From NCBI GenBank assembly GCA_964035545.1, contig OZ037770.1, forward strand, positions 8,686,973-8,750,972: DNA of 64,000 nt, given 5' to 3'. This DNA comes from Bugula neritina. Lineage: Eukaryota > Animalia > Bryozoa. Positions 39,341-63,321 of the stretch are shown here, in pieces (positions within the stretch are counted from its first letter, which is position 1; each line of letters starts with the position of its first letter). A program made the translations under genes and the position numbers. The notes under the pieces were generated by a model, which saw only the letters and a program-made list of their open reading frames with translations, had not been told where the DNA came from and ran no database searches.

Positions 39341-40425
39341 CTTAGTGGCACATTTCAGCTGATTTATAGACTCCTGAAGGGACTTCAACTCACTAGTCGC
39401 TGCTTTTACTCTGGGAACCAACCGATGCACTTCTCTCTCTAGCTCGTTGGTCCTTACTTCGACTTCCCGCAGGTTACGGGCCAGTCGAGAGGAACTGGAG
39501 GAGGACTGACGGAGTCGATGTCTCTTCCGATCTGCTGCGGGAGTGGAAGCGGAAGGTTGTAGGCTTGTGTGTCGATGCGCTGGAGGATAACACGGGGGAG
39601 GGTTTTAGGACGACGGATCGAGTTGGTTGGAGACGGAGTAGAGAAGCCAGGAGGCTTAGTGACAGGTCTTGGTGTAATGGGTCACGGGAAGGGGAGTCCT
39701 TGCTCCAGACGGGTCAGTCGAGCGGGGTCAGTGACGAAGGGCCGGATGAGGTTGAGGAAAACAAGATAAGAACTCTCATCCACGTCGTAAGGGTGTCCAG
39801 GGAAGCAACTCATGGTTCGCTGATGTCTGAGCACATAGTTCCTGTGGTAACTATATTCACCGAATGGACAGAAGGTAATTACGAAATGCTGAGGGAGGTG
39901 GACCCGCAGCCTGCGGTGTGTTGTAAAGTGCTGCTGACACAAACGGCACTCCGTGTTATTCTTGTATCCTCTGTGTTTTTGTATCTCCGTCTCTGTGGCG
40001 GGTGTAGTCCAGCAAAACTTGGATTCTAGCTGGTACGGTAGTTTCCTAGTGGAGGGGGTGTGTGTTGTAGGCTCCGGTTTCCTGGCCATCTCCAAAGGTG
40101 GCATCTCTGGTGAGATGGAAGCGAGTGCATCGTCTACAAAAGTAAAATTATTGTCAGATGGCAAAGAATTTTTACAACATAATTCTAGTGACGATCGACT
40201 GTTACTAGTCTGAGAGTCACAACTTTTATAAGACACTCGAGAGACCAGTTGATTACGTGTAGACTGACCAAGAATGACAGTGTCTAGCTCGAGATCTAAC
40301 AGTTCGTCCGCCATTACTGCGTCCTCATCGTCATTCACAATAAATGTGGTCCCCGGTAACTCTGATTCAATCCGATGGATTAGTTCAGAATTAACTGTTT
40401 CCTGTTTCCATAAATAGGAATACAA
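39341..40425 (-). pseudogene. Gypsy accessory ORF after pol: C2H2 zinc fingers, Pro/Ser-rich linker, PxVxL, basic patch, coiled coil
   Basis: ORF 39682-40425 contains CRLCQQHFTTHRRLRVHLPQH (Cx2Cx12Hx3H). The frame continues past a single TGA to LPRVILQRID. After one frameshift it reads RKRHRLR...NLREVEVRTNELEREVHRL...LKSLQESINQL. Confidence 0.7.
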
Positions 40426-40469
40426 GACTTAGACAGGCTTACCTGTGAACTTGGTATTGATCGATATAC

Positions 40470-43400
40470 TCAATGTTCAGTAGTAGTAGTTGTGAGCTCA
40501 AGAGGTAGTTGCGAAATACGTCTGCCCTTGGCGATGTCAGCGTAGGAAAAGGCCGAGCAGCGTGTTTGCTGCGCGTGGTTGGAACTCTTTGCTCCGGCCG
40601 CATTAATTCCTCCGACTACTCCGCCCTCGCTAAAGTTGATATTTGCGTGGGGCTCACAACTCTTACATTTGCCTGATAGTTCTCTCGTACGGTTTCCCCC
40701 TAGACTTTCATACGCGCCGCTTTGGATGCAGTCACATACAAAATATTTTAAATATGATGGGGGTTGCCTCGTACGTTGTTCCCGCTCTAGGGAAGGTGAC
40801 GCACTCGCCGGTGGACTAGTGAGTACCACTGGCGGTGCTTCTGGTTCACCGGTAGTGATTACTTTTTCCTGTTCTCCGGATGGAGCCCCTCCCTCTGTGG
40901 GGGTTTGCACTTCCGGAACCAGCTCGGTTTTTGGAAGTGATGGTATCAGAATTGGTATAAGAGGCGGCGGGCGCACTTCAGTGGGTAAAAGTGGTCGCTC
41001 GTCTCGTACCAAGTCCTCTTCCTGCGGAATGACCACTTAATACTCGGGTCCATGCCGTCGTAGTCCACGCGTTGTCGTCTGCTTCCTTGGCTCTAACAAC
41101 GGGGGGGGGGGAGACTTCTCCCACTGCGTCTGGGCTAGCCCAATACGGCTTCAAGCAAGCCTCATTTTGGATGGACATTTGTCCTGAGCGCTCGATCTTG
41201 TGGGTATGGTTGGGCATAGCCTCAACTATCACGTAGGGTCCTACAAACTTAGGCTGTAATTTAGCCGCCTGCCCGCGATGCCTACGATAATTGACCATCC
41301 ACACCCAATCTCCTGTCTGATAGAGGGGTGGCTCCTCAGAATCTTCGCGCCGCACCTGCCACTGCTTCTCCCCCAGCATTTCGTGTGCGACCCTCATCCG
41401 TTCCACTAGTTCACTGGCATACTCGTGAACTGAGTTGTCTTGCTTTGGAATTTGGTAGGTAAGATTGTCAGGGACCCGAGTCTTCCTCTCGAGCATCCGG
41501 AGGTTTGGGGTCTCACCAGTGCTGGTGTGTGGGGTGCTACGGTATGCGCGTATGACTTGTGGCAATACCGTATCCCATTCCTCTTGACTGCGTCTGAGGA
41601 GCAGACTCCGGAGCGCATCACCTAGCATCCGGTTGTTGCGCTCCACTACCCCGTTATCCTAGGGATGATAAGGGGTGGTCCTGCTCTGATTCATTGCCCA
41701 GAGGCGGCAAAGGTCGCTCATCAGTTGAGAATGGAACTGAGCGCCTTGGTCAGAGTGGATCTGTTCGGGGAGGCTGAAGTAACAGAAGACATGTTGGTTT
41801 AGCACCCTGACCACTGTCGGAGCTGACGCATCTGGGATCACCAGAGCGTCCGCCCACCTGGTAAAGTGGTCGGTTAATACTAAGATCCAACTGTTGCCTC
41901 TGGGGGTTAGGGGCATGGGTCCGACCAGGTCGACAGCTACTACTTGCCACGGCCTTCCAGCATATAACCTTCGCCGTCCCGCTTCACCAGGGAAACGTCC
42001 ATGCTTGCTGGCCTGGCAGATTTCACACTGTTTTACTCTGAGTCGAACATCACGCCCCATAATGGGCCAATACCGCTGGAGTTGCAATTTAGAGAGCACT
42101 CTCTGGACTCCTGTGTGAGCCTGTTTGTGAATGTCCCAAATTAACTCACGGCGTATGGCAGTGGGGCAGACCACCATTTTCCTCTCCGGGTGTCTGCCGT
42201 GGCAGACCATCTTGCCCGATCCTCAGCAACTCCCAACGTTGACAGAATAGCCGGAACTCGGCGCATCCCTGTCTTATTTGTTCCTCGCTGGGTCGTCGCC
42301 CTTCCTTTTTGGCCCGATATATGTCTGCCACTACTCCAGACAGTTCGTCCTGAAGCTTCTTCAGCTCCCGGACATCATCAGCAAAAAGGTTTGGCGCGGA
42401 GGTTTTGTACAACCTCCGGGGACTCGTCAACCTTCCGTTGGAGTTGACCCTTGTCCCAGTCAAACTGTGCTCCGTGGTGAGCCAGTGTCTCTAACTCACA
42501 TCGTGGGGGACCTCCATCCCTCCTCTCGATGTTGAGACACTGTTTACAACCTCCATCAGGTCGCCGGCTCAAACTATCCGCATTGCTGTGTCTCTCACCT
42601 GGCCGGTGTTCGATCCGGTAGGAGAACTCAGCTAGGATTTCGAGCCATTGGGGGACCTGACTGGACAGCTTTGCTCTCTTGCACAACCAGATAAGGGAGG
42701 CATAATCCGTACGCAGCCGCAACTTCCTGCCGTACAGGTATGGTCTGAAGTGCTTCACTGACTTAAATACTGCCAGTAACTCTTTGCGGGTAGTGCATTT
42801 AATTTCGTTCAGTGGGTGAGAGAGACTTGCTGTAGTAAGCTACTACTACTTCTCGGCCTTTCTGCACTTGGGACAGCACAGCGCCAACATTCTGGCCACT
42901 GGCGTCTGTGTCAAGGATGTACTCCAGAGTTGGGTCTGGGTAGGCCAAGATAGGTGCCGTCAGTAGGCAACCCTTGAGGCGGTCGAACGCTCATTGTTCG
43001 ACCGGGGTCCACTGCCACATCACTCCCTTTGCGGTGAGCCGGTTTAATGGCCGTGCTATCCCCGCAAAGTCTGGTATGTATTGTCTGTAATGCCCCACCA
43101 GACCCAAGAAGGCCCGGAGTCTGGTCAAATCTTGAGGGGTGACCCAGTCGTCTATCACCCCTAACTTCTCGGGATCCGTTGCCATGCTGTTTCCATCGAC
43201 AACATGCCCCAGGTACTTAACCTCCAGCTGCAATAGAGCGCACTTGGAAGGTTTCAGCTTCAGACCGGCGCCTCTGAGTCTTTCAAAAACCTCCCGCAGA
43301 CGACTGATGTGTGTATCGAAGTCTGGAGAGATCACGATGACGTCATCGAGGTAAATCGACAGTGTCTTCTAGTGGAGTCCGCTGAGGACTTGCTCCAACA

Positions 43401-44688
43401 GACTCTGAAAAGTGGCCGGGGCAGAGGTTAACCCGAAGGGCAACACCTTCCACTTCCACAGTGCATCCCGTGTGATAAACGTCGCCTTCTCCGCTCAACA
43501 AGTCTAACGTACTGAAGTACTTGCTGCCGGCTAGGGCGTCCCGTGATTCATCAATACGAGGTAGAGGGTAGGCGTCCTGTATGATCACGCTATCGAGCTT
43601 GCGGTAGTCCACACAAAACCGCCAACTTCCGTCTTTTTTCTGGACCAGCAAGACCGGCGAGCCCCACGCACTGTGGACTGGCTCGATAAGACCGCGATCC
43701 AAAAGATTCCAGACTTGTCGGCTGACCTCCTTTTCTGGCCCCAACCTGCATGTGGGTTGCCGAATAGGGACTGTCCCTGCAGTCAGCAGTATCTCGTGTC
43801 TGACAGCTCCAGTCAGTCCCACGTCATGATCTCCGCTGCTGAACACACCACCGTAGTCGCGTAGCAATTTCGCCATAGTCTGGCGTTCCTCGTTGTTCGC
43901 GCAGCCACCACAAGCTGTCTCGTTTTACTCCCTGATGTGTGTTGGAACAGTCCCCCGCCCCTTTGGAGGGCATCGAGGGGGCCCTTCTGTCGTATCTCCC
44001 AGCCACGGGCCCACGTCCTTCTCTTGGACAGAGTGGAACTGGCCCAACATAGATCCAGCTAGTAGCTTAATGGACTCAGTAAAAAGATTTACGCACTGCA
44101 CCAAGATCTCTTCTCGTGCAGTTAGCTGGTTCAGACTGCTGGCGAGTTAGATTATTTCATGCGCGCCTTCAACTACCCCGAGTCCAGAGATCTGGTTATT
44201 GTTCACTCTGCAGTGGATAGTAGCCCGAGAGCGTCCCGGTACGGTGCAGTTCCGGATTACCTGGACACCTCCCACTAGAGGACGCCCGGACTTATCCACA
44301 CATTGGAGTTCTCGCCCGCCCATCAGCACTGCCGACTTACTAAAGTCGATGCGCATTGGTGCCGCTTCAAAAAGGGCATTCCGAGAATAGCATCCTCCTC
44401 CAGTTGGCTGATGACAAAAGTCTCCTGTACAGCCTGGTCTCGGACACGCCAAGTGAGTTCTATGATACCATGGAAGGGGATACACGACCTACCTGCTAGG
44501 GTGCCATGTTCTCCCGTATACGGTCGTACTCTGTCCCTGTCCTGGCGGGAAAGTGTCTCGAAGACCCTACGACTGAAGAGGTTCGTAGTACAACCGGAGT
44601 CTAGCAAGAAAGTGACAGCTTTACCCGCCATTTTTCCTGGTCGGAAATAACTATCTCCATGTGGTTGTACCTTCACCACACCCCGCAT
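40470..44688 (-). pseudogene. Gypsy pol (PR-RT-RH-IN), fragmented
   Basis: ORF pieces 44323-44688, 43343-43876, 42991-43335, 42378-42758, 41659-42210, 40978-41646 and 40470-41036 carry the canonical motifs. Confidence 0.93.
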
Positions 44689-44699
44689 GCTCAGTTCTC

Positions 44700-45888
44700 C
44701 CTGGGAAGAGCTGCGGGGGTGTTGCCCATGGCTTACGAAGCCTTCGGCGACGGGGCTTGTGCCTGAGCGTGCCCAGGCTCTCCACTGGGCCTTCCGGCTC
44801 TACGTTAGTGGTGGCCTCCTTTTCCTCGGGTTTCCTCGGGTAACCGATGAAACGGTTAGTGAGTGGCAGCGAAAAAGTAACTGGCCGCCGTGCAGGTCGG
44901 CTGGTCTTGCGTAGTACCTGTCATTCGTGGGGAGCATACCGTCGCGTCTGTACAGACGGCCGGAGGTGTGTCTTGCTATGGTCTTTTAGTCTCGGCCCGC
45001 GGAGAGGGAAGGCGTCCGCGGGCCGTGGTAGTTCAACGCCCTTTGATTCCGGGGGTGTCCTCTCTGAGGGCGAGCCTGACTACCGCTTCCCAAGCCCGGC
45101 ATCGCAGATGCCATAGGCAACTGCTGGGGCCTTTGCGGTGGTTGGATGGAGTTGGTGTGAGCGAGAATCGCTACCAACTGTTCTAACATCCCGCCATGCG
45201 ATTCACCTCCGCGTCCAGGGGAGAGGCTTTTGGGGCCGCTGCGGTGCTAGAGAGAGGTAGCGGTGCCGCATATCCTTCCGCGGCGTTTAATTCCAACTGG
45301 TGGTGGGTTTTGTTGTCCCTTATGTAGTTGTGTAGCTAGTAGGTAAGCCTCTCTGGCTCGTAGAGCGTCTTCCACCGTGGTCACTCCTTTGGCTTGCAAT
45401 TGGTGGTGCAGACCCGATTCTTTCAACGATTAGACAAACGCATTATAGGTATAGCGCTCTTGGTGTTACACTGGTAAGTCGCCATACGCAATCTGCGCCA
45501 GTCTCTTCACCATAGCTGCATGCTCTTGTAGCGAAGATCGCGGAGTGCGGCATAACCTCTGCAGGCGGGCCCTGGCGTCTACTGCGGAGATACCGAAACG
45601 GGCCCGCAGCGCAGCAAAGATCTCGCCTATGTTAGTTCCTAGTCCGTACGGTTTGGCCTGCTCCGTCAATGCTCTCTGTAGCTGAATAAGGGCCACTCTG
45701 GGTGGCCATTGAGCGAGGTCTATCACCTCTCTGAATTCCTGTATGAACTGCTCTACATCTTCCGATCCGGTAAAGATAGGAGCTTTCAATCGGTACCGAT
45801 AAGCCTCCTCTCCTTGTAACACTGGACCTTCTGGGGTTATTGTAAAATCAGGCTCACCTTCTCTCTGTCGAGCTGGTTCTCTCGCCAT
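44700..45888 (-). pseudogene. Gypsy gag, fragmented
   Basis: Lies directly after the PBS. KAPIFTGSEDVEQFIQEF...LRARFG is a capsid-like motif. Confidence 0.85.
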
Positions 45889-45953
45889 CTTAGTCGTAGT
45901 TGTCAGTTAGGTTGCATCCGTGCTAGTATATAGAGATCCACTGCTGCCACCAC

Positions 45954-46262
45954 TGTTATAATTTCCACAATTATAATAAGTATGGGGATTCGTGTATACT
46001 GTAGGTATCCACGTTGCATTGCTAGACACCAGACATGTAATTAAGAGAGAAGAAGATTTATTTAACACACTAAGTAAAAGTCGTATAATCTGAGCAGCAC
46101 ACCTATATAAAACATCTATCCTAATACATGCAGCATCACGCTCTAACTGAATTATGTTATAAAATACTGTCCGGAAGCCTTTCTGCTTCGGCGGGGGTAA
46201 TCACGTGCTTAGTGGGAATTGGCTTGTGAGCACGTGGCGCCTACGCTTCACTGGTCACTACA
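45954..46262 (-). repeat. 5' LTR
   Basis: Followed on the minus strand by the PBS. Confidence 0.95.
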
Positions 46263-46797: not shown

Positions 46798-49616
46798 ATG
46801 GGAAAAAGCTTTCAAGAACATCCTAACGATCAGAATTTTAGCCCTAATTTTGTAAAAGTGGAACCGCCAACAGGTGAGTATTCTTATGTAACTTGCAGGA
46901 ATTATTGCTTGCTGAATTAAAGTCGTAGTTTGGGTGACCGTCAATTGTGATCTTAACAGATATAGAGATTAAGCTAGAACCTGTAGATGAACTTGTAGAA
47001 GATCCTACAGAAGATCATGCAGAAAATCGTTTAGTGAACGTGGAGATACCAACAGGTTAGCATTTCTATTTGATGGCTAATTTTCTGAGTGATACAGAAA
47101 TTATTGTATGAATGTCTTAATCTTTCATGATTCATCAAATAGCACTTGTTTCTTCACCAGATGTTGAGATAAAGCTAGAACCTGAAAAAGGACACGCCGG
47201 TGAATTTGCAGAACAACAGATATTACGAGTTCGTAAAAAGGTGGCTTTTCAGTGTTTCCATGCTGACTGTGACTGTACTAAGGAATCCAGCCTAGCTATG
47301 CATATGGTAACTCACACAGGAGAAAAGCCTTTCCAGTGTTCTAAATGTGACTATAAATGTAACCGAAAAAGTTACCTGGATAGACATATATTAACTCACA
47401 CGGGTGAAAAACCTTTCCAGTGTTCCAAATGTGACTATAAATGTGCTCTAAAATCTAGATTAGCTAGACACATGTCAACTCACGCAGGAGAAAAGCCTTT
47501 CCAGTGTACCAAATGTGACTATAAATGTAACCGAAAAAGTTATCTGGATAGACATATGTTAACTCACACGGGTGAAAAACCTTTCCAGTGTTCCAAATGT
47601 GACTATAAATGTGCTCTAAAATCTAGATTAGCTAGACACATGTCAACTCACGCAGAAGAAAAGCCTTTCCAGTGTTCCAAATGTAACTATAAATGTAACC
47701 GAAAAAGTTACCTGAATAGACATATGTTAACTCACACGGGTGAAAAACCTTTCCAGTCTCCCAAATGTGACTATAAATGTGCTGTAAAATCTAGCGTAGC
47801 TAGACACATGTCAACTCGCGCAGGAGAAAAGCCTTTCCAGTGTTCCAAATGTGACTATAAATGTAACCGAAAAAGTTACCTGGATAGACATATGTTAACT
47901 CACACGGGTGAAAAACCTTTCCAGTGTTCCAAATGTGACTATAAATGTGCTGACAAATTAAGCCTAGCTATGCATATGTCAACTCACACAGGACGAAAGC
48001 CTTTCCAGTGTTCCAAATGCAAATATAGATGTAATCAAAAAGGTTACCTGTATAGGCATATATTAACTCACACAGGGGGAAAAATTTTCCAGTGTTCCAC
48101 ATGTAACTATAGATGTAACCGAAAATACAGCCTAGCTATGCATATGTCAACTCATACGGGAGAAAAGCCTTTCCAGTGTTCCATTTGTGACTATAAATGT
48201 ACTATAAAATCCAAACTAGCCAGACACATGTTAACTCACACGAGTGAAAAACCTTTCCAGTGTTCCAAATGTGACTATAAATGTGCTCTAAAATCTAGAT
48301 TAGCTAGACACATGTCAACTCACGCAGGAGAAAAGCCTTTCCAGTGTACCAAATGTGACTATAAATGTAACCGAAAAAGTTATCTGGATAGACATATGTT
48401 AACTCACACGGGTGAAAAACCTTTCCAGTGTTCCAAATGTGACTATAAATGTGCTCTAAAATCTAGATTAGCTAGACACATGTCAACTCACGCAGAAGAA
48501 AAGCCTTTCCAGTGTTCCAAATGTAACTATAAATGTAACCGAAAAAGTTACCTGAATAGACATATGTTAACTCACACGGGTGAAAAACCTTTCCAGTCTC
48601 CCAAATGTGACTATAAATGTGCTGTAAAATCTAGCGTAGCTAGACACATGTCAACTCGCGCAGGAGAAAAGCCTTTCCAGTGTTCCAAATGTGACTATAA
48701 ATGTAACCGAAAAAGTTACCTGGATAGACATATGTTAACTCACACGGGTGAAAAACCTTTCCAGTGTTCCAAATGTGACTATAAATGTGCTCTAAAATCT
48801 AGCTTAGCTAGACACATGTCAACTCACGCAGAAGAAAAGCCTTTCCAGTGTTCCAAGTGTGACTATAAATGTAACCGGAAAAGTTACCTGGATAGACATA
48901 TGTTATCTCACACGGGTGAAAAACCTTTCCAGTGTTCCAAATGTGACTATAAATGTGCTGAAAAATCAAGCTTAGCTATTCATATGTTTACCCACACAGG
49001 AGAAAAGCCTTTCCATTGTTCCATATGTGACTATAAATGTACTATAAAATCTAACTTAGCTAGACACATGTTAACTCACACAGTTGAAAAACCTTTTAAG
49101 TGTTTCAAATGTGACCATAGATTTAAGCGAAAGTTCAGCCTAGCTAGGCATATGTCAACTCACACTGGAGAAAAGCCTTTCCAGTGTTCTGAATGTGAAT
49201 ATAAATGTGCTGTGAAATCCAGCCTAGCTAGACACATGTTAACTCACACAAGTGAAAAACCTTTCAAGTGTTCCAAATGTGACTATAAATGTGCTTTGAA
49301 ATGCCACCTGGCTATGCATATGTCAACTCACGTGGGAGAAAAGCCTTTCCATTGTTCCAAATGTGAATATCGATTTAACCAAAAAAGCCACCTGGATAAA
49401 CATATGTTTACTCACACGGGAGAAAAGCCTTTCCAGTGTTCCAAATGTGACTATAGATGTAACCGAAAAAGCCACCTGGATAAACATATGTTAACTCACA
49501 CAGGTGAAAAGCCTTTCCAGTGTCCCAAATGTGACTATAAATGCACTGGGCAACTGATTTTAAATCGTCACATGAGAGTTCATACAGGAGATAAATCTAC
49601 AAAATGCAATAACTGA
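46798..49616 (+). CDS. Tandem C2H2 zinc-finger protein, copy 1 (27 finger units, two with lost ligands, plus one degenerate lead finger)
   Basis: Exons 46798-46873, 46960-47055 and 47161-49616 with phase-1 GT-AG introns. 84-bp repeats with TGEKPF linkers. No KRAB, SET, ZAD or BTB domain recognised. Confidence 0.93.
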
Positions 49617-50371
49617 AGAAGTAAATTTAAATGTATAAGAATGTTGGAGAGCCATAGGCAAAGTGTACATACACAAACTCAACATGTATTTAAACTGTAT
49701 TGTATGTAGCTATAGGTGTAGAAGCAAATCTGCCTTAAGCAAGCAGTTTGCATCTCCTACATAGAACACTCTTTATGTCAAAATAGAAAAAACTTGTAGT
49801 TGAAAAAACTTTTGTTTGATCCACTATTTTATCTGCTGAACTCTCTGGTTTTACTGGTATGGTTATGTATACGTTTTTGGTGTAATGTATTCAATTTCAT
49901 CCCAAATCAAGTCAAATATAGTGATGTATGTTAGCTCTACCAGTTGTCTATATTCTATTGAGTATTCTATTTACTAGGTGCGATTGTGTCTACATCAAAC
50001 ATAATCTTATAATATAACTTTACAATTAACAGCCTATACTAACTATAGACTATTTTTCAATTAGCAATTAAGAGTTGTGCCCTCACAAAGTAAATCGATC
50101 AAACTTTTTGATAAAGAACAAACTCATTAAAAATTCAAAGTCTGTCTGCTACAAAAAATCAATGCTATAGCATTGTTCTTTTAGGGATTAACATTTATGT
50201 ACAAGCACACATATGTATTACCAGTTCCAAAAAAATTTAAAATATTTCTTCATGAAAAATTGTGAAAAAAATAATCTTGAAAGCTTTTCTGTGATTTCAG
50301 TTATTTAGCAATACTGAAGTGGCAGCTATGATATAAGGCTTATTAATCAGTCGTTGTGCTTCCTGTCACCA

Positions 50372-52946
50372 CACAGTTGGTTTAAGGTCATTACTTTCCA
50401 GATTCAGGCACTGCTTTATGTTATATATAAACGGTTTCCAGGGGATAGCTCGAACAGTTTTTGTCTCACATTAACAAATTTTACATGAAAAGATAGCTCT
50501 TGCATTCCTCTTTCATATACTTTTTTAATTTTTCAATAAAATTTTTTTTGAGAAAGTTGTTGCATAATAAGTAAAATTTTACACCCTCCATGTTCCACTG
50601 CTGTAGCACAGGGGATTCATTTTATAAAGTATAAAAGTTAAACTTGACATTCCTTGATATGTTTTCTCTAATATACTTTCTTTGTTTTTTGAAATTCTGT
50701 TTATGCTCTTCACAATTTGGTAAAAACATACACCATTTTGCAAGTTTCACTGCAATTTTCTAAATTCTTCATATGGTGGTTCTAGCTACGCTCCTGTGAC
50801 TAATTATAACATTCCTAGTACGTTTGCCGCTCTGCGCTATCACAATAACATATAGTACCCTCTCGCACAAATTGGCAGTATATTGGATTTCTGCCAATAT
50901 AATGTTCCCTGTTTTACATTAGCACTTAGCTGAATCATCTCACTATGTTACAATAATATATTGAAAATGCCTCAGCACAACATAATTCTTTGTTTGTTTG
51001 GCAGAGTTAATTTCAGCTAAATCACTTCACTTTGCAGTCTTGTCAGTAAAGGTCTGTCTATAGAGCAGCAGGTGTACTTTCAGTTTCTCTAATTCACATA
51101 TGATTATTTTAAGTACATTGTATTCTATAAGATCAATTTAAGGTTTAGTCCAGTGTTCAGTATCTAATTATTATGCATGTATGTTGTCTTACTGTTGAAC
51201 AAAAGTTAAAAAAAACTTTACAATTATAGCCATATTTATTATACATGCGTAGGATTTGCATAAGTTGACAAAAAAAATTGCGACAAAACAGGGTTGAACC
51301 ATAACCAACTAACTCCTCGCTGACGCCTCTAACCTCTAGACCACGCAGTCATCGTTAATAAGACGCGCACTATATGAGTAACTATCATTACATAAATATT
51401 TCGCGCGCAAAAGGGTTATAATTATTAGGCTGTCAATTCATGTTGATAGCAGTCAACTGTTGCAATAGTCTCGGGTTACTAGCAAAGCTAATGGTTTTGA
51501 ACAAATAACCCAAAAGTTTAAAAATAAGTAGCTTGCGTATTACTAGCTACAAAAACAGGTCTGAAATAGACTGGTAAAGCAAGCTCTTATTGTAGAGTTT
51601 GCAGATGTGCTCTAAAATAAAACTTAAACTGTATGGTATTACATAAGTATTTGTATGCGAGAGATAAATGGACATTACTGAGTTTCTGGAAAACAACATA
51701 CTTGAAGTTAACTTTGACAATGGTGTGTTATTTTCATCATACACTAGCACAGATAGGGCCTATAGCATAAATCTCTAATCATATGAATCTTTATGAAGCC
51801 CACAGCTCATGTAAGGGTGGCAAATGTAATTTGAAACTAAAAATTATGTTGCTGCATTTTGTCTAAGGTATATTAGAGAGCAGAATTTGGTTTTACTAGC
51901 CTGCCCCAACGGCATTCTACAATGCAGCTTATATGCTGGCAGTTGTAATAAGTACTGCCAATAGCAAGGTTACTATCACTGCTAGCTCTGTGCAGTATGT
52001 AACCTCTTGAATAATTGCGCCAATTTTAAACTCTTGGAAGTTGGCCAAGTTATCATATCGCAGCCAGCCACCGGAGACAAAGCATCAGAGCTATTTATAT
52101 AATATTATACTGATGCACTTGGTAGCAGAGTGGCTAATCTAATATAGTTCATAGTTCAACACCCTTTACTTTGGGAATACAGCCTCTTTTTTTAGGTTTA
52201 CCTTACAAAGCATGAAAATATCTAAACTGATATTCTGATAATTTAGAGGTACATTTTGAAAACTAGGTTAATTGCACTCGTTTGCACAACAACAATAATA
52301 AATTAGATATTATGCAGGATAATAAAAACACACATAATACTATATAATATATTATAATGATAATAATATAATATTATAAGTACCATTACTGCATTTTATA
52401 AATTACATGGTTGCCAAAAAAATGTATCACAAATTTTGTAATTATACATCAAAAATAGAACTAGCTAGGCAGCAGGTTAGAATAGAGTAAATTTTTAAAA
52501 CATGAAATCATGATTTGACTATTGTTTTATTTAGGCCAACCAACCTAGGAATACAAGATTGGGTTTTAGCTGACAGTTTATAACATTTAGCTTTTGAGCC
52601 AGCAGCACTGGCACTTGTGAAGTATAGGCAAAGTTAGTGAAGCGAGACTAACAAGCATTCAAATACAAGGCATATTGAGACGCAATAACAAGTCAGGAGC
52701 GTATAAATTGAAAAGAATGTGGAAGGGGGACTATGTTTTTCAACAAGCTATAACTTAAACATGAATTGGCTTTTGAAAAAAATAAAAAAGTATATTGGAG
52801 AACATAAGTTTCTTTATCTTTTTATATTTTTTTTGTTCCTGTGACATTCAACCTGTTCGAGCTATCAGCGGAACATTGTTCATATAGAACATAAAGCACC
52901 TGGCAAAGAGCCAGAAAATGAAAAGTATGACCTTAAACCAACTGTG
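50372..52946. mobile_element. Non-autonomous TIR transposon with CAC termini and 2-bp TSD (CMC/EnSpm-like)
   Basis: Perfect 20-bp terminal IR CACAGTTGGTTTAAGGTCAT extends imperfectly for about 100 bp. TSD CA. Precise empty site TGTCAC-CA-CTTTAG at about 57907. Confidence 0.85.
51280..51352 (-). mobile_element. Degenerate tRNA-like SINE head
   Basis: GCGTGGTCTAGAGGTTAG (A box) ... GGTTCAACCC (B box). Confidence 0.5.
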
Positions 52947-53312
52947 CACTTTATGGCTGTTGATCTTTCAACTCGGTTCAACTCCACTGTATGCAATAGT
53001 TGGTACTCAGTTAGAGCACATGCCTGCTAGTTATTTAATTTGTAGTGTTGAGACAGTGGCTTTGCTGTGTTGGCATGTTCAATTAAGTGTAATTACAATT
53101 TTATGCTATGAGAATAACTAGACTACCCCAATGTACAACGTTTTCACACAAAATATTTCACTAAAAATATAGATATATGTCAGATAGATAAATTAAACTT
53201 GTAATATGAAATGCTTATGAAATGTGAATTAAAACAGTACACATTTTCTATTTGTATATAAATTTGTTGCTACTCAGAATGTAAACCTGACTGTTGAATT
53301 TAAATCCAATGG

Positions 53313-54144
53313 TTACTGCCCTCCCCTAATTTGATGAATCTTTCCAATATGATGAGGGTAGTCTACTTCTAAATCTCTAAATGCAGAGTGAAGAAGGATC
53401 GCTCTGTAATGTGGCGCCTGAAAAGGGTTTTCGGGATCATTTGACCTTTTAGGAGAACTCAACATGATCTTTTGAACATACATAGCTATTGGTTGAAGAA
53501 CTCCATCAGGAGAGTTGAGATACACAATTGATCCGCTGTCACCTTCTACCAGTTGACTACAACATTTAAATTTATTACATTATGTGCATCTAAAACAGTG
53601 AGAGCTTTTTGATCGCAGGCTACTGTTGACTTACTGACTTTAATAATAAAAGCATTTTGTTGCTCAGAAATCAATTATGTGGTTATTATTGTCTAACTAC
53701 AGGAACTATATCTAATGCTATTAATTTTTTCAAAATATTTGTGCCCAAATAATTGTTCCAAATAGAAAAAAGCTTCCTTTGTAATTGCTAGGGTTGTTAT
53801 ATTGATTGATTACCTTTGAGTTTCTAAACTAAACATTAATGTCCTGCCACGGGTCCCAACGCTATCTGATGCTGAGGTGTTGCCTGGGCTTGCCAGTGTA
53901 TGTCCTTCAAAATCTTTTACTTTTATATTGTAACGATTTTTGCATAAAGCATCTATCCAGCTAATTGAAAACCCTCCGAAAATGTCTCCGATATTTCTGG
54001 GAGTTGTTGTAGCCAAAGCATTCTGTAGAGATTCAGCCACCTTGCTGTTCTCAATCTGCAGGAGTGCAATGTCATTTGCAATCACATGGTAGCAAGTTTT
54101 ATTGTTTGTTTCTGAATGATGAAAGTTATTGGCAGAACAAGTGT
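53313..54144 (-). pseudogene. 5'-truncated duplicate of the protease domain (Asp and Ser segments only)
   Basis: NDIALLQI and VEGDSGSIVY exons align with 58274-59057. Homology stops at the duplication junction near 54144, so the catalytic His segment is missing. Confidence 0.88.
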
Positions 54145-55763
54145 ATTTTCTCTCTACTCATGCATTTTACTCTCACGCCTATATTGTTTGCTTAAATATA
54201 ATTCACTTGTTTGGTTCCTCACATAACCTCACAGTTTAATGCACCAGTCAATAGCACGCAACAATACTAACAATTTAGTAGTGCACAAAACTACAACAAA
54301 ATTCCACTAAACCCTAGGGCCTAGGACATAGCTTAGCGTATTGTAGATGATGCAACACTAAGGTAGCAGTGTATGTATAGGAGCTGTCACGTTTGATGCA
54401 CCATAAATTACCACACTACACATAAACTGTGTTTAACAACTATACCAAAAAATAAATTAAAAAAACGTACACATAAAATAAAAAATAATAAAATATCAAA
54501 AGTTGCCAATTTGCCCTTTATTATTTATATAAACTCGCGGCACAGCACGCGGCATCATGATGCCTCCCCCTCCCATTGGTATCTAAAGTCGCCACTCTGA
54601 GGCCGATCATTGCTAATACTATAACTATAGCAGTAGCATCGGTCTAGTGAAAAAGGAAAGTACGTTTAAAAGCTGCAAATCGGGGTTTATCGAGTGCAGT
54701 AGTCAGGATTTTATACGAGTGAACTGAAACCCGCACATTCGAGCGTGATAACCACTACCCTAACTAGGTGCTGCATTTAGCGATATCCCTCTAACCAGCG
54801 TAGTAGCAATGGGAATGTGTAAATTATAATATTTCTAGTCATTTCGCATACTATACTCTATACTCTATAGTATTAAAATTATATTGATAACTAAATAAAT
54901 AATAGAAATCACGAGTTTCTATAATATGCATAGTCATGATGATAATGATTGTCAACTTCAAGCGACTAAGGCTTCGAACAGTTCTAAGGTTGTACTTGCT
55001 GAACTTGATAGTCATAAATCATAATGATAATCAAAATCATAATCATTATAATAATGATTAAATTTAATGATGACATCACAATGCTATTATTATTATTATT
55101 ATGATAATCATTATGATAATCGAAATGATAATGAATAAAAATATTGTTTTGTTAGCAGGTAATTACCTAATATACTAATACTAATAGTAATAGTAATAGT
55201 AATAGTAGTAACACTAACTCACACATTGTTATTCCTATTGCACCTACAATTACTCATTAGACTTAGTATTGCACTAGTGCTAGTAGTAGTAGTATTTCAT
55301 TTACTAATACTAATAGTTATAGTATTACTAATAGTAATAGTTAAACTAATTATAAATCAAAATGTAACTTTAACTTATAGGTGTTTTATAGAAAAATCTG
55401 TTTTGAGCGTCACTATTAGTATTAAAAAATTAGCATTTTTGTTATCTACTGTCCCATATATTTACATTTTTGTTTCAGTTTAAATTTACTTCAACCTAAT
55501 TGTTATTATATTATCATTATAGCTTCCAATTTATCCGGTTAGGTTATTGGTGACTGAACGCTAAGTAAATGTTATATGACAGAGCCCTCATGGGTGCTAG
55601 ATCGGGTGCCGTTGGAGCTGATAGAACTAAAAATGAAATGCTTTTAGTGTTCAAATCACGATTATGGTAAAATACTGCTCGCAGTAAGTAATGACTAAAG
55701 CATTATATGATCACCCATTTACACTAGTAGGCTATGTAGTTTTGTAATTGTGTGTTTTTTCAG

Positions 55764-57127
55764 ATGGAGAAAAGCTTTCAGGAAGATTCAAATGATCAGG
55801 AAGTCAGCCCCATCTTTGTAAAAGTGGAACCGCCAACAGGTGAGTATTCTTATGTAAATTGCAGAAATTAATGCTTGCTGAATTGAAGTTGTAGTTTGAG
55901 TGACCATCAATTGTTATCTTAACAGACATCGAGATTAAGCTAGAACCTGTAGATGAGCTTGTAGAAGATCCTACAGAATATCATGCAGAAAATCGTTTAG
56001 TGAAAGTAGAGATACCAACAGGTTAGCATTTCTATTTGATGGCTAATTTCTTGAGTGATACAGAAATTAATATATGAATGTCTTAATCTTTCCTGACTCA
56101 TGAAATAGCACATGTTTCTTCACTAGGTGTTGAGATAAAGCTAGAACCTATAGAAGGACACGCAGGTGAATTTGCAGAACAACAGATATTAAGAGCTCAT
56201 GAAAAGGTAGCTTGCCAGTGTTTCCGGGTTGACTGTGACTTTATTATAAAATCCAACCTAGCTGTGCATATAGTAACTCACACAGATGAACACCTTTCCC
56301 AGTGTCCCAAATGTGACTATAAATGTGCTGACAAATTAAGCCTAGCTATGCATATGTCAACTCACACAGGACGAAAGCCTTTCCAGTGTTCCAAATGCAA
56401 ATATAGATGTAATCAAAAAGGTTACCTGTATAGGCATATATTAACTCACACAGGGGGAAAAATTTTCCAGTGTTCCACATGTAACTATAGATGTAACCGA
56501 AAATACAGCCTAGCTATGCATATGTCAACTCATACGGGAGAAAAGCCTTTCCAGTGTTCCATTTGTGACTATAAATGTACTATAAAATCCAAACTAGCCA
56601 GACACATGTTAACTCACACGAGTGAAAAACCTTTCCAGTGTTCTGTATGTGGCAATAGATTTAAGCGAAAATGCAGCCTAGCTACGCATATGCTAACTCA
56701 CACTGGAGAAAAGCCTTTCCAGTGTTCCGAATGTGACTATAAATGTGCTGCAAAATCCAGCCTAGCTAGACACATGTTAACTCACACAGGTGAAAAACCT
56801 TTCCAGTGTTCCAAATGTGACTATAAATGTGCTTTAAAATTCCACCTGGCTATGCATATGTCAACTCACACGGGAAAAAAGCCTTTCAAGTGTTCTAAAT
56901 GTGACTTTCGATTTAACCAAAAAAGCCACCTGGATAGACATATGTTTACTCACACGGGAGAAAAACCTTTCCAGTGTTCCAAATGTGACTATAGATGTAA
57001 CCGAAAAAGCCACCTGGATAGACATATGTTTACTCATACGGGTAAAAAGCCCTTCCATTGTCCCAAATGTGACTATAAATGCACTACCCAATGGCATTTA
57101 AATCGTCACATGACAGTTCATACATGA
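55764..57127 (+). CDS. Tandem C2H2 zinc-finger protein, copy 2 (10 fingers plus a degenerate lead finger)
   Basis: Exons 55764-55839, 55926-56021 and 56127-57127 are paralogous to copy 1. The stop arises from GGA>TGA just after the last finger. Confidence 0.92.
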
Positions 57128-58273
57128 GATAAATCTATAAAATGTAATAACTAAAGAAGTAAATTTAAATGTATAAGAATGTTGAAGAGCCATAGGCAAA
57201 GTGTACATACACAAACTCAACATGTATTTAAACTGTATTGTATGTAGCTATAGGTGTAGAAGCAAATCTGCCTTAAGCAAGCAGTTTGCATCTCCTACAT
57301 AGAACACTCTTTATGTCAAAATAGAACAAACTTGTAGTTGAAAAACTTTTGTTTGATCCACTATTTTATCTGCTGAACTCTCTGGTTTTACTGGTATGGT
57401 TATGTATACGTTTTGGTGTAATGTATTCAATTTCATCCCAAATCAAGTCAAATATAGTGATATATGTTAGCTCTACCAGTTGTCTATATTCTATTGAGTA
57501 TTCTATTTACTAGGTCGATTGTGTCTACATCAAACTTAATAATCTTATAATATAACTTTACAATTAACAGCCTAACTTACTATAGACTATTTTTCAATTA
57601 GCAATTAAGAGTTGTGCCCTCACAAAGTAAATTGAGCAAACTTTTTGATAAAGAACAAACTCATTGAAAATTCAAAGTCTGTCTGCTACAAAAAATCAAT
57701 GCTATAGCATTGTTCTTTTAGGGATTAACATTTATGTTCAAGCACACATATGTATTACCAGTTCCAAAAAAATTTAAAATATTTCTTCATGAAAAATTGT
57801 GAAAAAAATAATCTTGAAAGCTTTTCTGTGATTTCAGTTATTTAGCAATACTGAAGTGGCAGCTATGATATAAGGCTCATTAATCAGTCGTTGTGCTTCC
57901 TGTCACCACTTTAGGGCTGTTGATCTTTCAACTCGGTTCAACTCCACTGTATACAATAGTTGGTACTCAGTTAGAGCACACAGCCTGCTAGTTATTTAAT
58001 TTGTAGTGTTAGAGGCAGTGGCTTTGCTGTGTTGGCATGTTCAATTAAGTGTACTTACACTTTTATGCTATGAGAATAACTAGACTACCCCAATGTACAA
58101 CGTTTTCACCCAAAATATTTCACAAAAATATAGATATATGTCAGATAGATAAATTAAACTTGTAATATGAAATGCTTATGAAATGTGAATTAAAACAGTA
58201 CAAATTTTCTATTTGTATATAAATTTGTTGCTACTCAAAATGTAAACCTGACTGTTGAATTTAAATCCAATGG

Positions 58274-61200
58274 TTACTGTCCTCCCCTAATTTGATGAAT
58301 CTTTCCAATATGGTGAGGGTAGTCTGCTTCTAAGTCTCTAAATGCAGAGTGAAGAAGGATCGCTCTGTAATGTGGCGCCTGAAAAGGGTTTTCAGGATCA
58401 TTTGACCTTTTAGGAAACCTCAACATGATCTTTTGAACATACATAACTATTGGTCTAAGAACTCCATTAGCAGAGTTGAGATACACAATTGATCCGCTGT
58501 CACCTTCTACCAGTTGACTACAACATTTTAATTTATTACATTATGTGCATCTAAAACAGTGATAGCTTCACAGTCGAAAGCTACTGTTGACTTATCAATC
58601 AATTATGCGGGTATTATTGTCTAACTATATTAAATGCTAATTTTAAAAATATTTGTGCCCAAATAATTGTTCCGAATAGAAAAAGCTTCTTTTGTAATTG
58701 TTTGAGCTGTAATTTTGATTGATTACTTTTGATTCTTCAAACTAAACATTAATGTCCTGCTACGGGTCTCAAGGCTATCTGATGCTGAGGTGTTGCCTGA
58801 GCTTGCCAGTGTGTGTCCTTCAAAATCTTTTACTTTTATCCTGTAACGTATTTTGCATAAAGCATCTATCCAGTTAATTGAAAACCCTCCGAAAATGTCT
58901 CCAATATTTCTGGGAGTCGTTGCAGCCAAAGCGTCCTGTAGAGATTCAGCCACTTTGCTGTTCTCAATCTGAATGAGTGCAATGTCATTTGCAATCACAT
59001 GGTAGCACGTTTTATTGTTTGTTTCTAAACAACAGGAGTTATGGGCAGGACAAGTGTGTTTATGCAAGTAAATTACAGGACATCGACTTCCATCCAAAGA
59101 AATATGCGACCTTACTAGCCAATCTCTATAACAGATCAAAGCTGGAGGCTTCAAGCCAATGCGTTTTTGATCAATCTGTATGGAGTACATATGGCGGGAT
59201 GTAAATTGTTCTACTTCCATCCTGAGTTTTGCTATGATGGAACATTCTCCCTCAGCATTTATGACATCTGAGTAATCGTCAGCCACAACTTCATCAGGTT
59301 GTTGTAGGCTACCTTCATTTGTGGCCATAGCTTCAGAAAGCATGTTAATGAGATTTTGGCATGCCTCTGAGGCCCTCAAAAGTTGCTGATCTGTCAACAC
59401 CAGGTGGGCAGGTACAACTGCGAAGAAAAGCCACTCGTTGTTATTGTAGCTAGATCTGGATTTTGCTTTTACAAGAAGTTCACAGCTCGCTGTTTTTCCC
59501 ATAGTGCACCAATCACGTTTATCTCGATGCTTTATCTCTTTTTTTACACGTAGGGCATGGAACTCGTATTTAGTGTCATCTTCAGCGCGGATATCTACTG
59601 AAATCACAAAATCCTCAAACTTGTTTATGATATCTTCGAAAGAAACATCCTCATAGGTAGGATTGATGATTTTCAGCAAAATGTGTTTGTAGTTGTTAGG
59701 TGATTGCCAATTCGTTGCTAATTTCAGTTTCTTTTCCTGACAAAGTCTAAAATAAAAATTACAAAAATTATAAAATAAAAAATTACGACACCTCATTGAA
59801 GATCACCAATTTAAGCTATTCTTGCAAACTCTTACCCACTGACAAGTTCAACAAGCTTAGGGGGTATAGGCTTCCACCCCTCTTCGTGATAAACACATGA
59901 ATTGAGAAACTCCAAGGCAGTAGCCTCATCTTCCTCCCCACTCAGCTCTGGACTATCCTCTTTTGTTTCTTAAACAGTACAAAATATTAACACTATTCAT
60001 TAAAACAAATAATGATGCACTATTATTATACCAGCATTATAGGAACTACTTAATGGGTAATCAATTGCTGATGACTTAATTTCATATCATGGAATTTTAT
60101 TAGGGCTCAACGCAGTATAGTGAGGACCGAGTAGAGATTAGATATGACAATGTGAACTTTAAATTTATATCAAAGCAAGACCTGTTTAATATCACATAGG
60201 GCAGACAACATAATTGAATATTCAGAGCTAAAAAATCTTTAATACATTATAGTATAATGTATTATTTTTTAATACAATATAGTATAATGCAATATAAAAT
60301 AATATAATGTAGCATAATGTAACATAATATGATATAGTATAGTACAATATAAAATAATATATTAATATAGTATAATATGAAATATTACCATAATTATAGT
60401 AGATATATCACATAATGCAAAATAATGCAATATAATATAATATAATGTAACATAATATGTACTATGTAACACAATATAATGTAATATAATATACGTAGTA
60501 TAATCAATATAATATATGTGATATGCATATATGCCATAAGGCATAAACCCTGAAAGAATTAAGATAGCCTATATGGATATGTGTTATGAAGCTCCTCAAC
60601 GCATACATAAATAAAGAGCATGTGGTTAGTTAGTAGCTAAATGTGACTAGCTAGTGCCACTCTTACCAGACACCAGTGCAAATATTTGTTAAATAACATA
60701 ATTTAGCAAAAAAGTGCGTTATAGGAACACGCTGTATAAAAACTTTTCACTATAAGACACTATTTCTCAAAAAATGAGGCCTAATAAATAAGTTACAAAG
60801 CATTATTTTTTGTTTTTAGCACTGCCATAATTGTAATACTACGCCTGCACAGGACCACGGTGGTGAAAAGTGACCAAGGGTTGTAATGATTGTAATACTA
60901 AAAGCAAATTGGCAGCAGTAACCATAAAATACCAGAAGTAGCTGGCGGTTGAAGATGTACAGAACCAGTCATAGAGACGTTTTCAATATCAGAGTTTGGG
61001 GAGGCTGATCTATATGATGCAGTCATAGAACTTAGCCCACTATCTGTCCCTTCTGCAAGAAAATGAAACATATTGATATCTAGCGCGCATGTAAGGTGCA
61101 TACTTTTTGTATATGGCGGCTAGATTAGCTCAACAAATTACGGTTTAACTTACTATTCTAGGTTATACATTATAGTCAGCTCATTTGGCAGTAAGCGCTG

Positions 61201-63321
61201 ACTTTACAAGTTGCCTGTTTGACGAATAACAACAATTGTTCGTTGCAGGTTATTCGCATAAACGTTACTACATCAAAATTATTTTATAACTTTTATATGC
61301 ATCATATACCGAAATTATTGCCTGTGCTTTCAACTTTGCTAAATATACACAACTATTTTTTTCTTGTGTAGCAGTGAGTATATTAATTTGTGAACGTTTT
61401 ACATTTCATAACAATCACAATTCAATTTGTGAAAGACGTAAATAAAACTACATACCTACTAACATATTAAAGCCTAAAAAGCTTAAATATATATTTTCTA
61501 ATAATCATTCAATTGAAAAATTAAAAAAGACTAAGTTTCGCATCTAACTCACTCAACTCCGAGACTCTTAATGGTTCAAAACTATCCATTTGGAGTATAG
61601 AATCAGAATCTGCCAGGGTTGAATTCAAATCCTCCCCACCTGTTTTCAATTAGTCAAAATTATGATAAAGAGGATAGATTGTAAGTTTTGTAATGACTAA
61701 CTACAAGTATACTTTATTGCAAAAATTTTACTGCTGCGTTACTATAGTTATATTATAGGAATAAACAGTCAAAGAACTGCAATGTCAGTATTATCTCTAT
61801 GGATTAGGGCCTACAGCTACTTCCATATAGAGAATCCAAAAGTCTCCTACGCTTATGATTGTCAAAAATCAATATAAATTAATGGAAGAAATTGAATTAT
61901 ATATATGAGGTGTTATTTGCATGTTATTGATGGTTTTGTGTAATAAATTCTTTATCTCTGTGCGTATTCATAAAAATAATTTGATTATATATATACACCA
62001 ATAATATATCTATAGATATTGCCAGTGGTCATTAAATTATGGTATGTTAAGCCATGGTTTATAAAAATCTTTATTAATTGTTATATTATATATAAACATA
62101 TTTCTATTACCCAAACAAGACAATGCGGAGATAGGTAAGGTGAGAAAAATCTTTAAACATAATATTATATACAAATTTTGCTAATTTTTAACTATATTAT
62201 ATCTTAGCATGTATCAACTACATGATACTATGCTGAATCAATTTTTGGTGATGCATTAGGCAAACTAGACACACTATTTTAGCAAAATTATCAGCACATA
62301 TTATGTAGGTTAAAAGTTAGTTGAAATTGCTGTGTATGTAACATTACAATATAATAAGTAATTGATGATGTAAGTCGTAATTTTATTTTACCTGCTCTAT
62401 GATCAGTTTCTGTCATGTATTTTTGAATGAGAGAACCCATACTCCGTATACCACAGTGCTCGGCAATCTCAACTGGCTTCAAATGGTTAACATTTTTCAA
62501 TTCTAGTATTGCCTTTTGATCTCTTAAAGACAAGATCTTTAGCAAACACTCCATTTTGTCCACTTCATCGGTATAAGCCACACTGTGCACTGGCGAATTT
62601 GTAAAAGTTCTAACTTGTTTTCTGGTGATATCCTGCGGTTTATCATATTCATGAGCTCTGTAAAAAGACCACTGGAGCTGACATTTAGTGCAAGGTGCAC
62701 TACAGTCTGTCCAAGATTGTTTTGAGTTGCCAACAGAGGACAAAGTATTTCCGATGGATGCTCATCCATAAATGTTTTTAAAACTTTAGTGCTGCCTCTT
62801 TGTATGGCAACATGGAGCAAAGTATTACCTGCATGGCATTTGGCATTGTAGAGGTTAGTAAACTGCTTTTCCATGATAAAGTTGATGAAGAGCTTTAAAA
62901 CTTCTGATCTGTTGTAGTGAGCTGCGAAATGCAAAGGTGTATACCCAGAATAATTTTGGCTTCCTAAAAGTTCACGCATGTCTTCTGGTGGTAATAAGTC
63001 AATTATCTTCTGCAGTGTGTCAACCTTTGTATAAACAGTTGCCCAGTGTACCGGCGTGTTTCTCTCTCTATTCTGAGCCTTTAGCAGCTGATGTCTCATG
63101 TCACGATCCAAACAGAGTAAAATAGTAGACATTGTGTCTTCTTTTGACTTTTCTGCGGCTCTGTGTGCAGCTGAAGCACCTTCCTCATCTTGGGCAGTCA
63201 GTAGCTCCAGCTTCTGCTGCTGAGAAAGAGGGTCTAGTAATCTGTTTATAGCGTGTAGATCTTCCTCCATAACAGCCTTATACAAAACACTCTTGTCATT
63301 GGTAGACATGACAGCGGACAC
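58274..63321 (-). CDS. Ankyrin-repeat / trypsin-like serine protease fusion gene (frameshifted at about 62594 in this sequence)
   Basis: Phase-consistent exons 62392-63321, 61553-61639, 60933-61052, 59836-59968, 58727-59746 and 58274-58517. About 7-8 ANK repeats (TPVHWA, TPLHFAA, TLLHVAI), an acidic Ser-rich linker, then the triad motifs AVVPAHLV, NDIALIQI and EGDSGSIV. First ATG at 63309; further 5' exons are possible. Confidence 0.82.
60240..60535. repeat. Degenerate pentanucleotide (TATAA/TGTAA)n satellite in an intron
   Basis: Seen directly. Confidence 0.8.

Follow-up and report, generated by a model that had tools for sequence, protein, structure and literature searches.

Can open reading frames (ORFs) that are listed separately in a bryozoan genome sequence, one encoding ankyrin (ANK) repeats and another bearing active-site motifs of a trypsin-like protease, be parts of one gene, and what kind of protein would such a gene make? 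The question is raised by a 64,000-nucleotide (nt) stretch of Bugula neritina DNA (GenBank assembly GCA_964035545.1, contig OZ037770.1, positions 8,686,973 to 8,750,972; hereafter "the window"). An earlier note, made from the letters alone, had read positions 58274-63321 of the window as a six-exon ANK-protease fusion gene encoding about 850 amino acids (aa), a candidate intracellular sensor-effector protease. The answer we favor, with a probability of about 0.72, is that we are dealing with a genuine gene of six exons in a bugulid bryozoan, frameshifted in the haplotype that was assembled, which combines an ANK array, a probably disordered linker and a domain of the PA (chymotrypsin) fold in a protein that would work as a cytosolic endoprotease.

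Six exons on the minus strand

The window is AT-rich eukaryotic DNA (about 30-35% GC) and the locus lies on its minus strand. All five introns have GT..AG splice sites, with phases 1,1,1,2,2, exactly as predicted. The exons are:

63309-62392, minus strand: exon 1 (918 nt), with the ATG at 63309-63307, an ankyrin-repeat array and a GT donor at 62391-62390 (phase 1)
61639-61553, minus strand: exon 2 (87 nt), acidic and Ser-rich linker, with an AG acceptor and a GTGAGT donor
61052-60933, minus strand: exon 3 (120 nt), Ser-rich linker, with canonical splice sites
59968-59836, minus strand: exon 4 (133 nt), acidic linker, with the C-terminal end ...KLVELVSG
59746-58727, minus strand: exon 5 (1020 nt), small N-terminal alpha/beta subdomain, barrel 1 and most of barrel 2
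58517-58274, minus strand: exon 6 (244 nt including the stop at 58276-58274), GDSGS, the last barrel-2 strands and a C-terminal helix

Exon 1 matches the Pfam families Ank_2 (E 2.6e-23, 63309-62542), Ank_4 (1e-14) and Ank (1.6e-12). The exon has tandem 33-residue ANK repeats, the repeat that spans the deletion site described below being broken in the assembly. The N-terminal residues (MSTNDKSVLYKAVMEED...) do not form a hydrophobic signal sequence and the ATG is preceded, 12 nt 5′, by an in-frame stop, which bears out the earlier statement that no signal peptide is evident. Exons 2 to 4 are acidic and Ser-rich, as had also been noted, and probably form a disordered linker of about 115 aa.

The three active-site motifs occur in chymotrypsin order. 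VVPAH (His114 codon at 59406-59404) and NDIAL (Asp254 codon at 58986-58984) are both in exon 5, whose numbering is used here for H114, C232, C239, C247, H249 and D254. Exon 6 begins with QLVEGDSGS; its GDSGS lies 15 nt past the acceptor, upstream of the called ORF start, which is where the motif had been said to hide. The codon for the nucleophile Ser is AGC, at 58498-58496. Asp and Ser are separated by 93 residues (about 92 in the first estimate). The His-to-Asp distance is 140 residues, as against approximately 45 in trypsin, because His114 and Asp254 are set apart by an acidic insertion of approximately 100 aa.

A frameshift in exon 1 and an intact allele

As assembled, the exons add up to 2522 nt, a length not divisible by 3, and therefore no single ORF of approximately 850 aa exists in the sequence as it stands. 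Three-frame translation locates the problem in exon 1, where the 260-aa ANK ORF is out of frame with the donor at 62392. The frame switches near 62590; the ANK frame then stops at 62539 (premature stop at 62541-62539), and a second frame encodes ANK-like sequence (SPVHSVAYTDEVDKMECLLKIL...) as far as the donor. The claim that the 260-aa ORF joins exon 2 in matching frame did not hold.

Two public read runs bear on this point. One, X2, behaves as DNA of the same species, since it carries the same organism label, covers the introns and is 97-100% alike. The other, X1, is a 2016 run labelled RNA-Seq, "symbiont metagenome"; being 90-95% alike, it comes from a relative. X2 has 22 additional bases behind 62589 (one X2 contig covers the place and no other form is seen there), and the X1 contig that covers exon 1 (contig 8) likewise shows exactly 22 gap letters. 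With the 22 X2 bases restored, exon 1 runs through 313 codons plus one base without a stop, the restored stretch reads ...LLQIRQDKGENTAVHSVAY..., a regular ANK repeat, and the coding sequence (CDS) lengthens to 2544 nt, enough for 847 aa. What was assembled is therefore a frameshifted allele, with the following lesion:

62589..62590, minus strand: site of a 22-base-pair (bp) deletion relative to the conspecific X2 reads, with CAG microhomology flanks

The protein of approximately 850 aa is encoded by other alleles in the species and not by the assembled sequence; to that extent the prediction of one long protein stands. Because the deletion shifts the frame, the assembled allele should yield no more than a truncated ANK protein or be degraded. 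A practical consequence is that annotation pipelines will split or drop such a frameshifted locus.

Transcript support and exon joins

The relative's RNA (X1) covers every exon, and its depth is zero in the intron bins 61177-61357 and 61720-62262. One of its joints, 59746->59836, coincides exactly with intron 4, which has minus-strand GT..AG ends. Two more, 61044->61553 (exon 2/exon 3; model 61052/61553) and 59969->60939 (exon 3/exon 4; model 59968/60933), fall within 1-8 nt of the exon model. An X1 contig spans exactly the 87 nt of exon 2, starting at its acceptor and joining on towards exon 3, and the contig over exon 1 terminates exactly at the donor at 62392. These data show that a spliced exon 2-3-4-5 RNA is present in the relative and fit the use of the exon 1 donor. 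Of the junction reads by which the earlier note had proposed to link all six exons, they supply one exactly and two approximately. The exon 4/exon 5 join is found, in addition, in the Bugula protein P0001, which unites the equivalents of both exons.

For the last join, between exons 5 and 6, the evidence comes from homologues. Three Bugula proteins (P0007, P0024 and P0025) are continuous over the equivalent of this junction, and every paralogue read has an acceptor AG 13-16 nt 5′ of GD[CS]G, with an exon that aligns with exon 6. We join exon 5 to exon 6 because these proteins run across, the acceptor is conserved and the phase is 2 on both sides.

The first join deserves closer scrutiny, as the ANK exon might belong to a separate gene, or be a remnant, with the protease gene beginning at or after exon 2. 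No 62392-to-61639 joint is found among the read joints listed, about half of the paralogue loci lack an ANK exon within 8 kb upstream, and two B. neritina database contigs that carry an exon 4-6 copy (see below) have no exons 1 to 3 within 10 kb. Against such a split, the donor at 62392 has phase 1, matching what exon 2 requires, and no start codon context is present in exon 2 itself; one of the relative's RNA contigs ends exactly at the exon 1 donor and another begins exactly at the exon 2 acceptor; the entire CDS is in frame once the 22 nt are restored; and ANK repeats accompany the protease domain at five other loci and in three predicted Bugula proteins. We regard two separate genes as improbable and infer that exon 1 is joined to exon 2.

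Within intron 3, at positions 60270-60530, lies an AT-rich repeat where both read runs reach extreme depth and contain many rearranged joints, which gives it a dispersed or satellite-like look.

Fold and active site of the protease domain

Sequence searches failed to place the C-terminal domain in any protease family. Neither exon 5 nor exon 6 has a Pfam match at E <= 1, Trypsin (PF00089), Trypsin_2 (PF13365) and Peptidase_C3 included, and hmmscan gave no protease-family match at E <= 10, Nal1_C (PF25819) included, for P0007, P0024 and P0025. A family profile run against the PDB sequences returned chance-level matches alone (E > 0.2). A genome-wide search with PF25819 found zero matches, but its controls were equally silent.

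The fold was assessed on an AlphaFold2 (AF2) model of P0007, a natural 462-aa Bugula protein that contains the equivalents of both exons, built with a 24-row family alignment. The model (predicted local distance difference test score, pLDDT, 72; predicted template modeling score, pTM, 0.70) has the chymotrypsin fold. Compared with the PDB it matches 110 chains at Z >= 8, and those listed are PA-fold proteins. The best match is rice NAL1 (VIA Z 14.6 over 240 residues; Foldseek E 9e-7), followed by DegS/HtrA (Z about 12, range 11-12) and FAM111A (Z 11.9, 8S9K); lower down come Umb-toxin proteases, many S1 enzymes and the 3C protease of hepatitis A virus (HAV; Z 11.0). Picorna-like viral polyproteins match more weakly (Foldseek E 3e-5 to 1e-3). 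FAM111A, which the earlier note had offered as comparator, is a structural match, the nearest solved fold being NAL1 and then HtrA/DegS. Shape and language-model feature searches of the ESM Atlas pointed to Nal1_C, Trypsin_2 and S64 clusters and to mollusc clusters, which we treat as leads only.

In the P0007 model the His comes after a strand, where a short helix begins; the Asp comes before a strand; the nucleophile (a Cys in this protein) occupies a turn that leads into a hairpin; and the domain ends in a closing C-terminal helix. Chymotrypsin has the same arrangement. Exon 5 of the window gene, modeled alone and thus lacking exon 6, gave a weak model (pLDDT 64) in which only barrel 1 matched PA proteases (Z 4-5), as is expected of a truncated input; on the paralogue, the check for a two-beta-barrel fold suggested at the outset came out positive. 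For the alpha/beta subdomain of approximately 55 aa that comes ahead of the protease domain, no structural match reaches significance (Z about 5).

Taken through this paralogue, the modeled fold supports assignment of the domain encoded by exons 5 and 6 to clan PA, as had been proposed. The window gene has the order His, Asp, nucleophile and the G-D-S/C-G turn, and the candidate triad consists of His114, Asp254 and the Ser of GDSGS. Exon 5 positions invariant in 30 family sequences are V110, H114, R175, R207, C232, C247, H249, N253 and D254, the His and Asp of the candidate triad among them. Since the sequence tests for S1, Trypsin_2, Nal1_C and Peptidase_C3 all failed, we call the domain NAL1-like in fold only. 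A group of conserved residues lies just before Asp254:

58999..59052, minus strand: Cys-Cys-Cys-His cluster, with C232, C247 and H249 invariant and C239 at least 90% conserved (alignment A2)

By analogy this cluster may be a structural zinc site; hepatitis C virus NS3 and picornavirus 2A proteases carry zinc sites.

A bryozoan family with two nucleophiles

A phmmer search of 1.84 billion representative proteins found 18 relatives and a profile search of 5.8 billion proteins found 11. All of these matches are Bugula neritina proteins or metagenome/Logan contigs, the nearest database proteins being B. neritina hypothetical proteins at 88% identity. By these searches the family appears to be a sequence orphan, found only in bryozoan-like sequences. 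No publication on it was found in the literature. The suggestion that the protein belongs to no characterized family is in line with the outcome of the Pfam, PDB-sequence and literature searches.

In the 216-Mb assembly to which the window belongs (on contig C6), exon 6-type matches occur at 15 to 25 places on seven contigs, and we put the family at about 24 loci. Nucleophile and upstream exons were read at 13 paralogue loci; about ten further exon 6-type matches lie outside the read set (a cluster at C7:11.98-12.44 Mb; C3:6.7/13.4/21.6 Mb; C2:31.27 Mb; C8:9.12 Mb). The nucleophile is Cys in all 13 paralogues, in the motif GDCG in 12 and GHCG in one. The Cys codon, in 12 paralogues, is TGT in ten and TGC in two. 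Among the loci read, Ser, encoded by AGC, one step from TGC, is found only in the window gene and its truncated duplicate (see below). The description of a serine protease with GDSG holds for the window gene; the family as a whole is mainly of the Cys type. Ser members do exist outside the window's genome, as a family member from another organism carries GDSGL (L045, positions 2515-2799; ENA metagenome contig ERZ27264286 k141_1437124).

An attempt to polarize the Ser/Cys difference with a tree of exon 5 equivalents failed: the tree has no outgroup, the window branch is long and the window copy is only weakly grouped with a Cys paralogue (L025). On such a tree the switch may have gone in either direction, the more so given the Ser member on the metagenome contig. 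To our knowledge, cellular chymotrypsin-fold proteases have been described as using serine, with Cys members known chiefly from RNA viruses. The present family is an intron-bearing animal family that holds both nucleophiles, a Ser (AGC) window gene among Cys (TGT/TGC) paralogues, and provides a natural pair in which to study the exchange of a nucleophile inside a single fold. It illustrates the single-step route between AGY and TGY codons, said to have been discussed since Brenner reportedly put forward, in 1988, an argument on serine codons.

The predominance of Cys raises the possibility that the domain was acquired from a picorna-like virus as a 3C-like cysteine protease, domesticated and later fused to host domains. 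The family motif GDCG is of the 3C type, and both the picorna-like polyproteins and the HAV 3C protease appear among the structural matches, with the scores given above. Cellular proteases score above the viral ones, however (NAL1 Z 14.6; HtrA/DegS about 12), and there is no Pfam Peptidase_C3 match. The Asp lies in a NDIALL context, which we take to be a cellular S1-type motif. The intron position is conserved at dispersed loci, Ser-bearing members exist (the window gene and the metagenome member), and no viral genes lie nearby. All told, a viral origin seems to us very improbable.

We also considered that the domain might be a non-catalytic pseudoprotease in which the PA fold serves as a binding scaffold, as in the comparable cases of haptoglobin, HGF and the scabies-mite SMIPPs. 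In favor are two unusual features, a long stretch inserted between His and Asp and the additional Cys cluster, and the presence of inactive PA-fold proteins among the structural matches. Yet His, Asp and a nucleophile in GD.G context are kept in every member read, and the sole nucleophile change seen, Cys to Ser, preserves the chemistry. A purely scaffolding role is, in our judgment, unlikely, and we retain the reading of the domain as a putative protease.

Of the 13 paralogue loci, 5 have ANK exons upstream in the same orientation, and about half have none within 8 kb. ANK repeats and the protease domain also occur together in three Bugula predicted proteins (P0025, 1071 aa; P0019; P0034). 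The fusion is therefore a recurrent layout and not an accident of this locus. As to the alternative N-terminal sensors that the earlier note had thought worth seeking along with family size, the regions upstream of the eight ANK-less paralogues revealed no Pfam domains beyond one unrelated integrase/SCAN transposon ORF. The latter (L041, positions 1836-4979) is a 1048-aa ORF with SCAN, Integrase_H2C2 and rve domains located upstream of one paralogue, a transposon-derived gene or an insertion.

A truncated duplicate and the state of the Ser lineage

A second, incomplete copy of the gene lies in the window:

52947..54148, minus strand: truncated duplicate comprising the last approximately 110 codons of exon 5, intron 5 and exon 6, with GDSGS and without the His region and the upstream exons

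It is 89% identical to 57907-59061, and was matched in the genome search at 82% over aa 228-339. The segmental duplication also copied the region downstream of a C2H2 zinc-finger gene (49662-50372 versus 57200-57909, 98% identity). Zinc-finger arrays are found at 47127-49616 and 56264-57127.

A counterpart of the duplicate, sharing its diagnostic residues, is present on two database contigs of B. neritina (VXIV02002375.1, positions 4800-6359, and VXIV02002376.1; loci L043 and L044). This copy consists of exons 4 to 6, exon 5 being interrupted by an in-frame stop (IALLQI*NSK) and exon 6 by a frameshift; it has no exons 1 to 3 within 10 kb and is annotated as two hypothetical proteins, P0001 and P0002. 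We had considered these contigs as an orthologue check on the window gene and rejected them: they match the duplicate copy, are broken and lack exons 1 to 3, and they show exon 1 as neither linked nor unlinked.

Several observations weigh against the gene as we read it. The transcript evidence is all from the relative's RNA, and neither the exon 1/exon 2 nor the exon 5/exon 6 joint is among the read joints listed for the two runs. The fold evidence derives from a paralogue about 25% identical to the window gene. The window copy is frameshifted in exon 1 and forms the longest branch of the family tree (2.37 versus a median of 0.87), the duplicate is truncated, and the B. neritina database counterpart of the duplicate has both a stop and a frameshift. 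Given the 22-bp deletion, the long branch and the broken or truncated copies, there is a genuine possibility that constraint on the Ser lineage has relaxed. Countering this, exons 2 to 6 of the main copy are open, the invariant residues are kept and conspecific reads have an intact exon 1.

In its strongest form the argument would be that the gene is decaying, the Ser lineage being non-functional in the species, a transcribed or silent pseudogene whose open exons 2 to 6 merely reflect how recent the decay is. A premature stop as early as exon 1, the longest terminal branch, a truncated duplicate 5 kb away and the damaged database copy would all be expected of such a gene. The ratio of nonsynonymous to synonymous substitution rates (Ka/Ks) against that copy, 0.38 overall and more than 0.7 in exon 6, points the same way, but it overstates relaxation because paralogues are compared and one of them is broken. 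On the other side, X2 shows only the form bearing the 22 nt, in its one contig there; exons 2 to 6 are free of stops, with H114, D254, the Cys cluster and GDSG all kept; and the relative's RNA contigs extend over all exons. We consider decay rather unlikely and favor a real gene that is null in the assembled haplotype.

Comparison with known proteases and possible function

Under the favored reading, intact alleles would encode an 847-aa protein without signal peptide, with the domain order ANK array (exon 1), acidic Ser-rich linker (exons 2 to 4), alpha/beta subdomain and PA protease domain (exons 5 and 6). The protein would act as a cytosolic endoprotease. Its ANK array might recruit a partner or substrate or, alternatively, might mask the active site by way of the flexible linker until released. 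The layout recurs among the paralogues, and the family provides the modeled fold and the invariance of His and Asp; catalysis and any regulation are putative.

FAM111 and Ssy5 are intracellular PA proteases with regulatory N-terminal parts. In this respect rice NAL1 (PDB 8PN2, 7Y77, 8PMM), the best structural match, is alike too, an intracellular PA fold with extra N-terminal domains. NAL1 is an intracellular PA protease with a regulatory N-terminal part (PMC12012508), and its Asp-to-Ser spacing is 94 (D291 to S385; PMC12012508) versus 93 in the window gene. The likeness stops at the fold: NAL1 has no detectable sequence similarity to the family, which has no Nal1_C match, and its His-to-Asp distance is 57 aa versus 140 aa in the window protein. 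NAL1 also contains an ATP-binding domain and assembles into a hexameric cage; the window protein has an ANK array and a predicted disordered linker instead. Moreover, NAL1 is a plant protein with a serine-protease domain, whereas the bryozoan family is animal and mostly has a Cys nucleophile. With this family, the range of NAL1-like intracellular proteases, so far plants and bacteria, would take in animals as well.

The remaining candidates are more distant. FAM111A and FAM111B are likewise intracellular animal PA-fold proteases with non-protease N-terminal regions, but they give no sequence match, have no ANK repeats and use a Ser nucleophile, and their structural score is below that of NAL1 and no better than that of HtrA. 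HtrA/DegS/Deg proteases (Trypsin_2) share the PA fold (Z 11-12) and appended regulatory domains, regulation being putative in the window protein; they act in the periplasm or in organelles, whereas the window protein looks cytosolic and has neither PDZ domains nor a Trypsin_2 match. Picornavirus 3C resembles the family in its chymotrypsin fold and in the Cys of G-x-C-G, as in the 13 paralogues. Its scores are weaker (Z 11.0; Foldseek E at least 3e-5) and no Peptidase_C3 match is found; the bryozoan family, for its part, is cellular, intron-bearing and multi-copy, and the window copy has Ser. With Ssy5 (S64) and with bacterial and fungal proteases that couple a repeat sensor to a trypsin-like domain, the common ground is the concept of a restrained intracellular PA protease with a sensing module, putative here. 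No sequence or profile link to these proteins emerged, the window protein lacks an NTPase or NLR module, and the S64 neighbors in the Atlas are a lead only.

Fused to ANK arrays, expanded to approximately 24 loci and confined to one phylum, the family is a candidate for a lineage-specific system of regulation or defense. In the sensor-effector scheme, closest to what the earlier note had in mind, a ligand or pathogen factor binding the variable ANK array would free the putative protease to cut substrates in immunity or cell death; the NAL1-like-fold family would have expanded in bryozoans, with switching between Cys and Ser and with presence/absence variants and null alleles, the 22-bp deletion among them, kept by balancing selection. 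The idea would fit a lineage-specific, expanded and fast-diverging family, but as an account of the putative role we hold it to be a long shot.

Elsewhere in the window, positions 40001-46000 form a GC-rich block (52-54% GC) amid AT-rich DNA.

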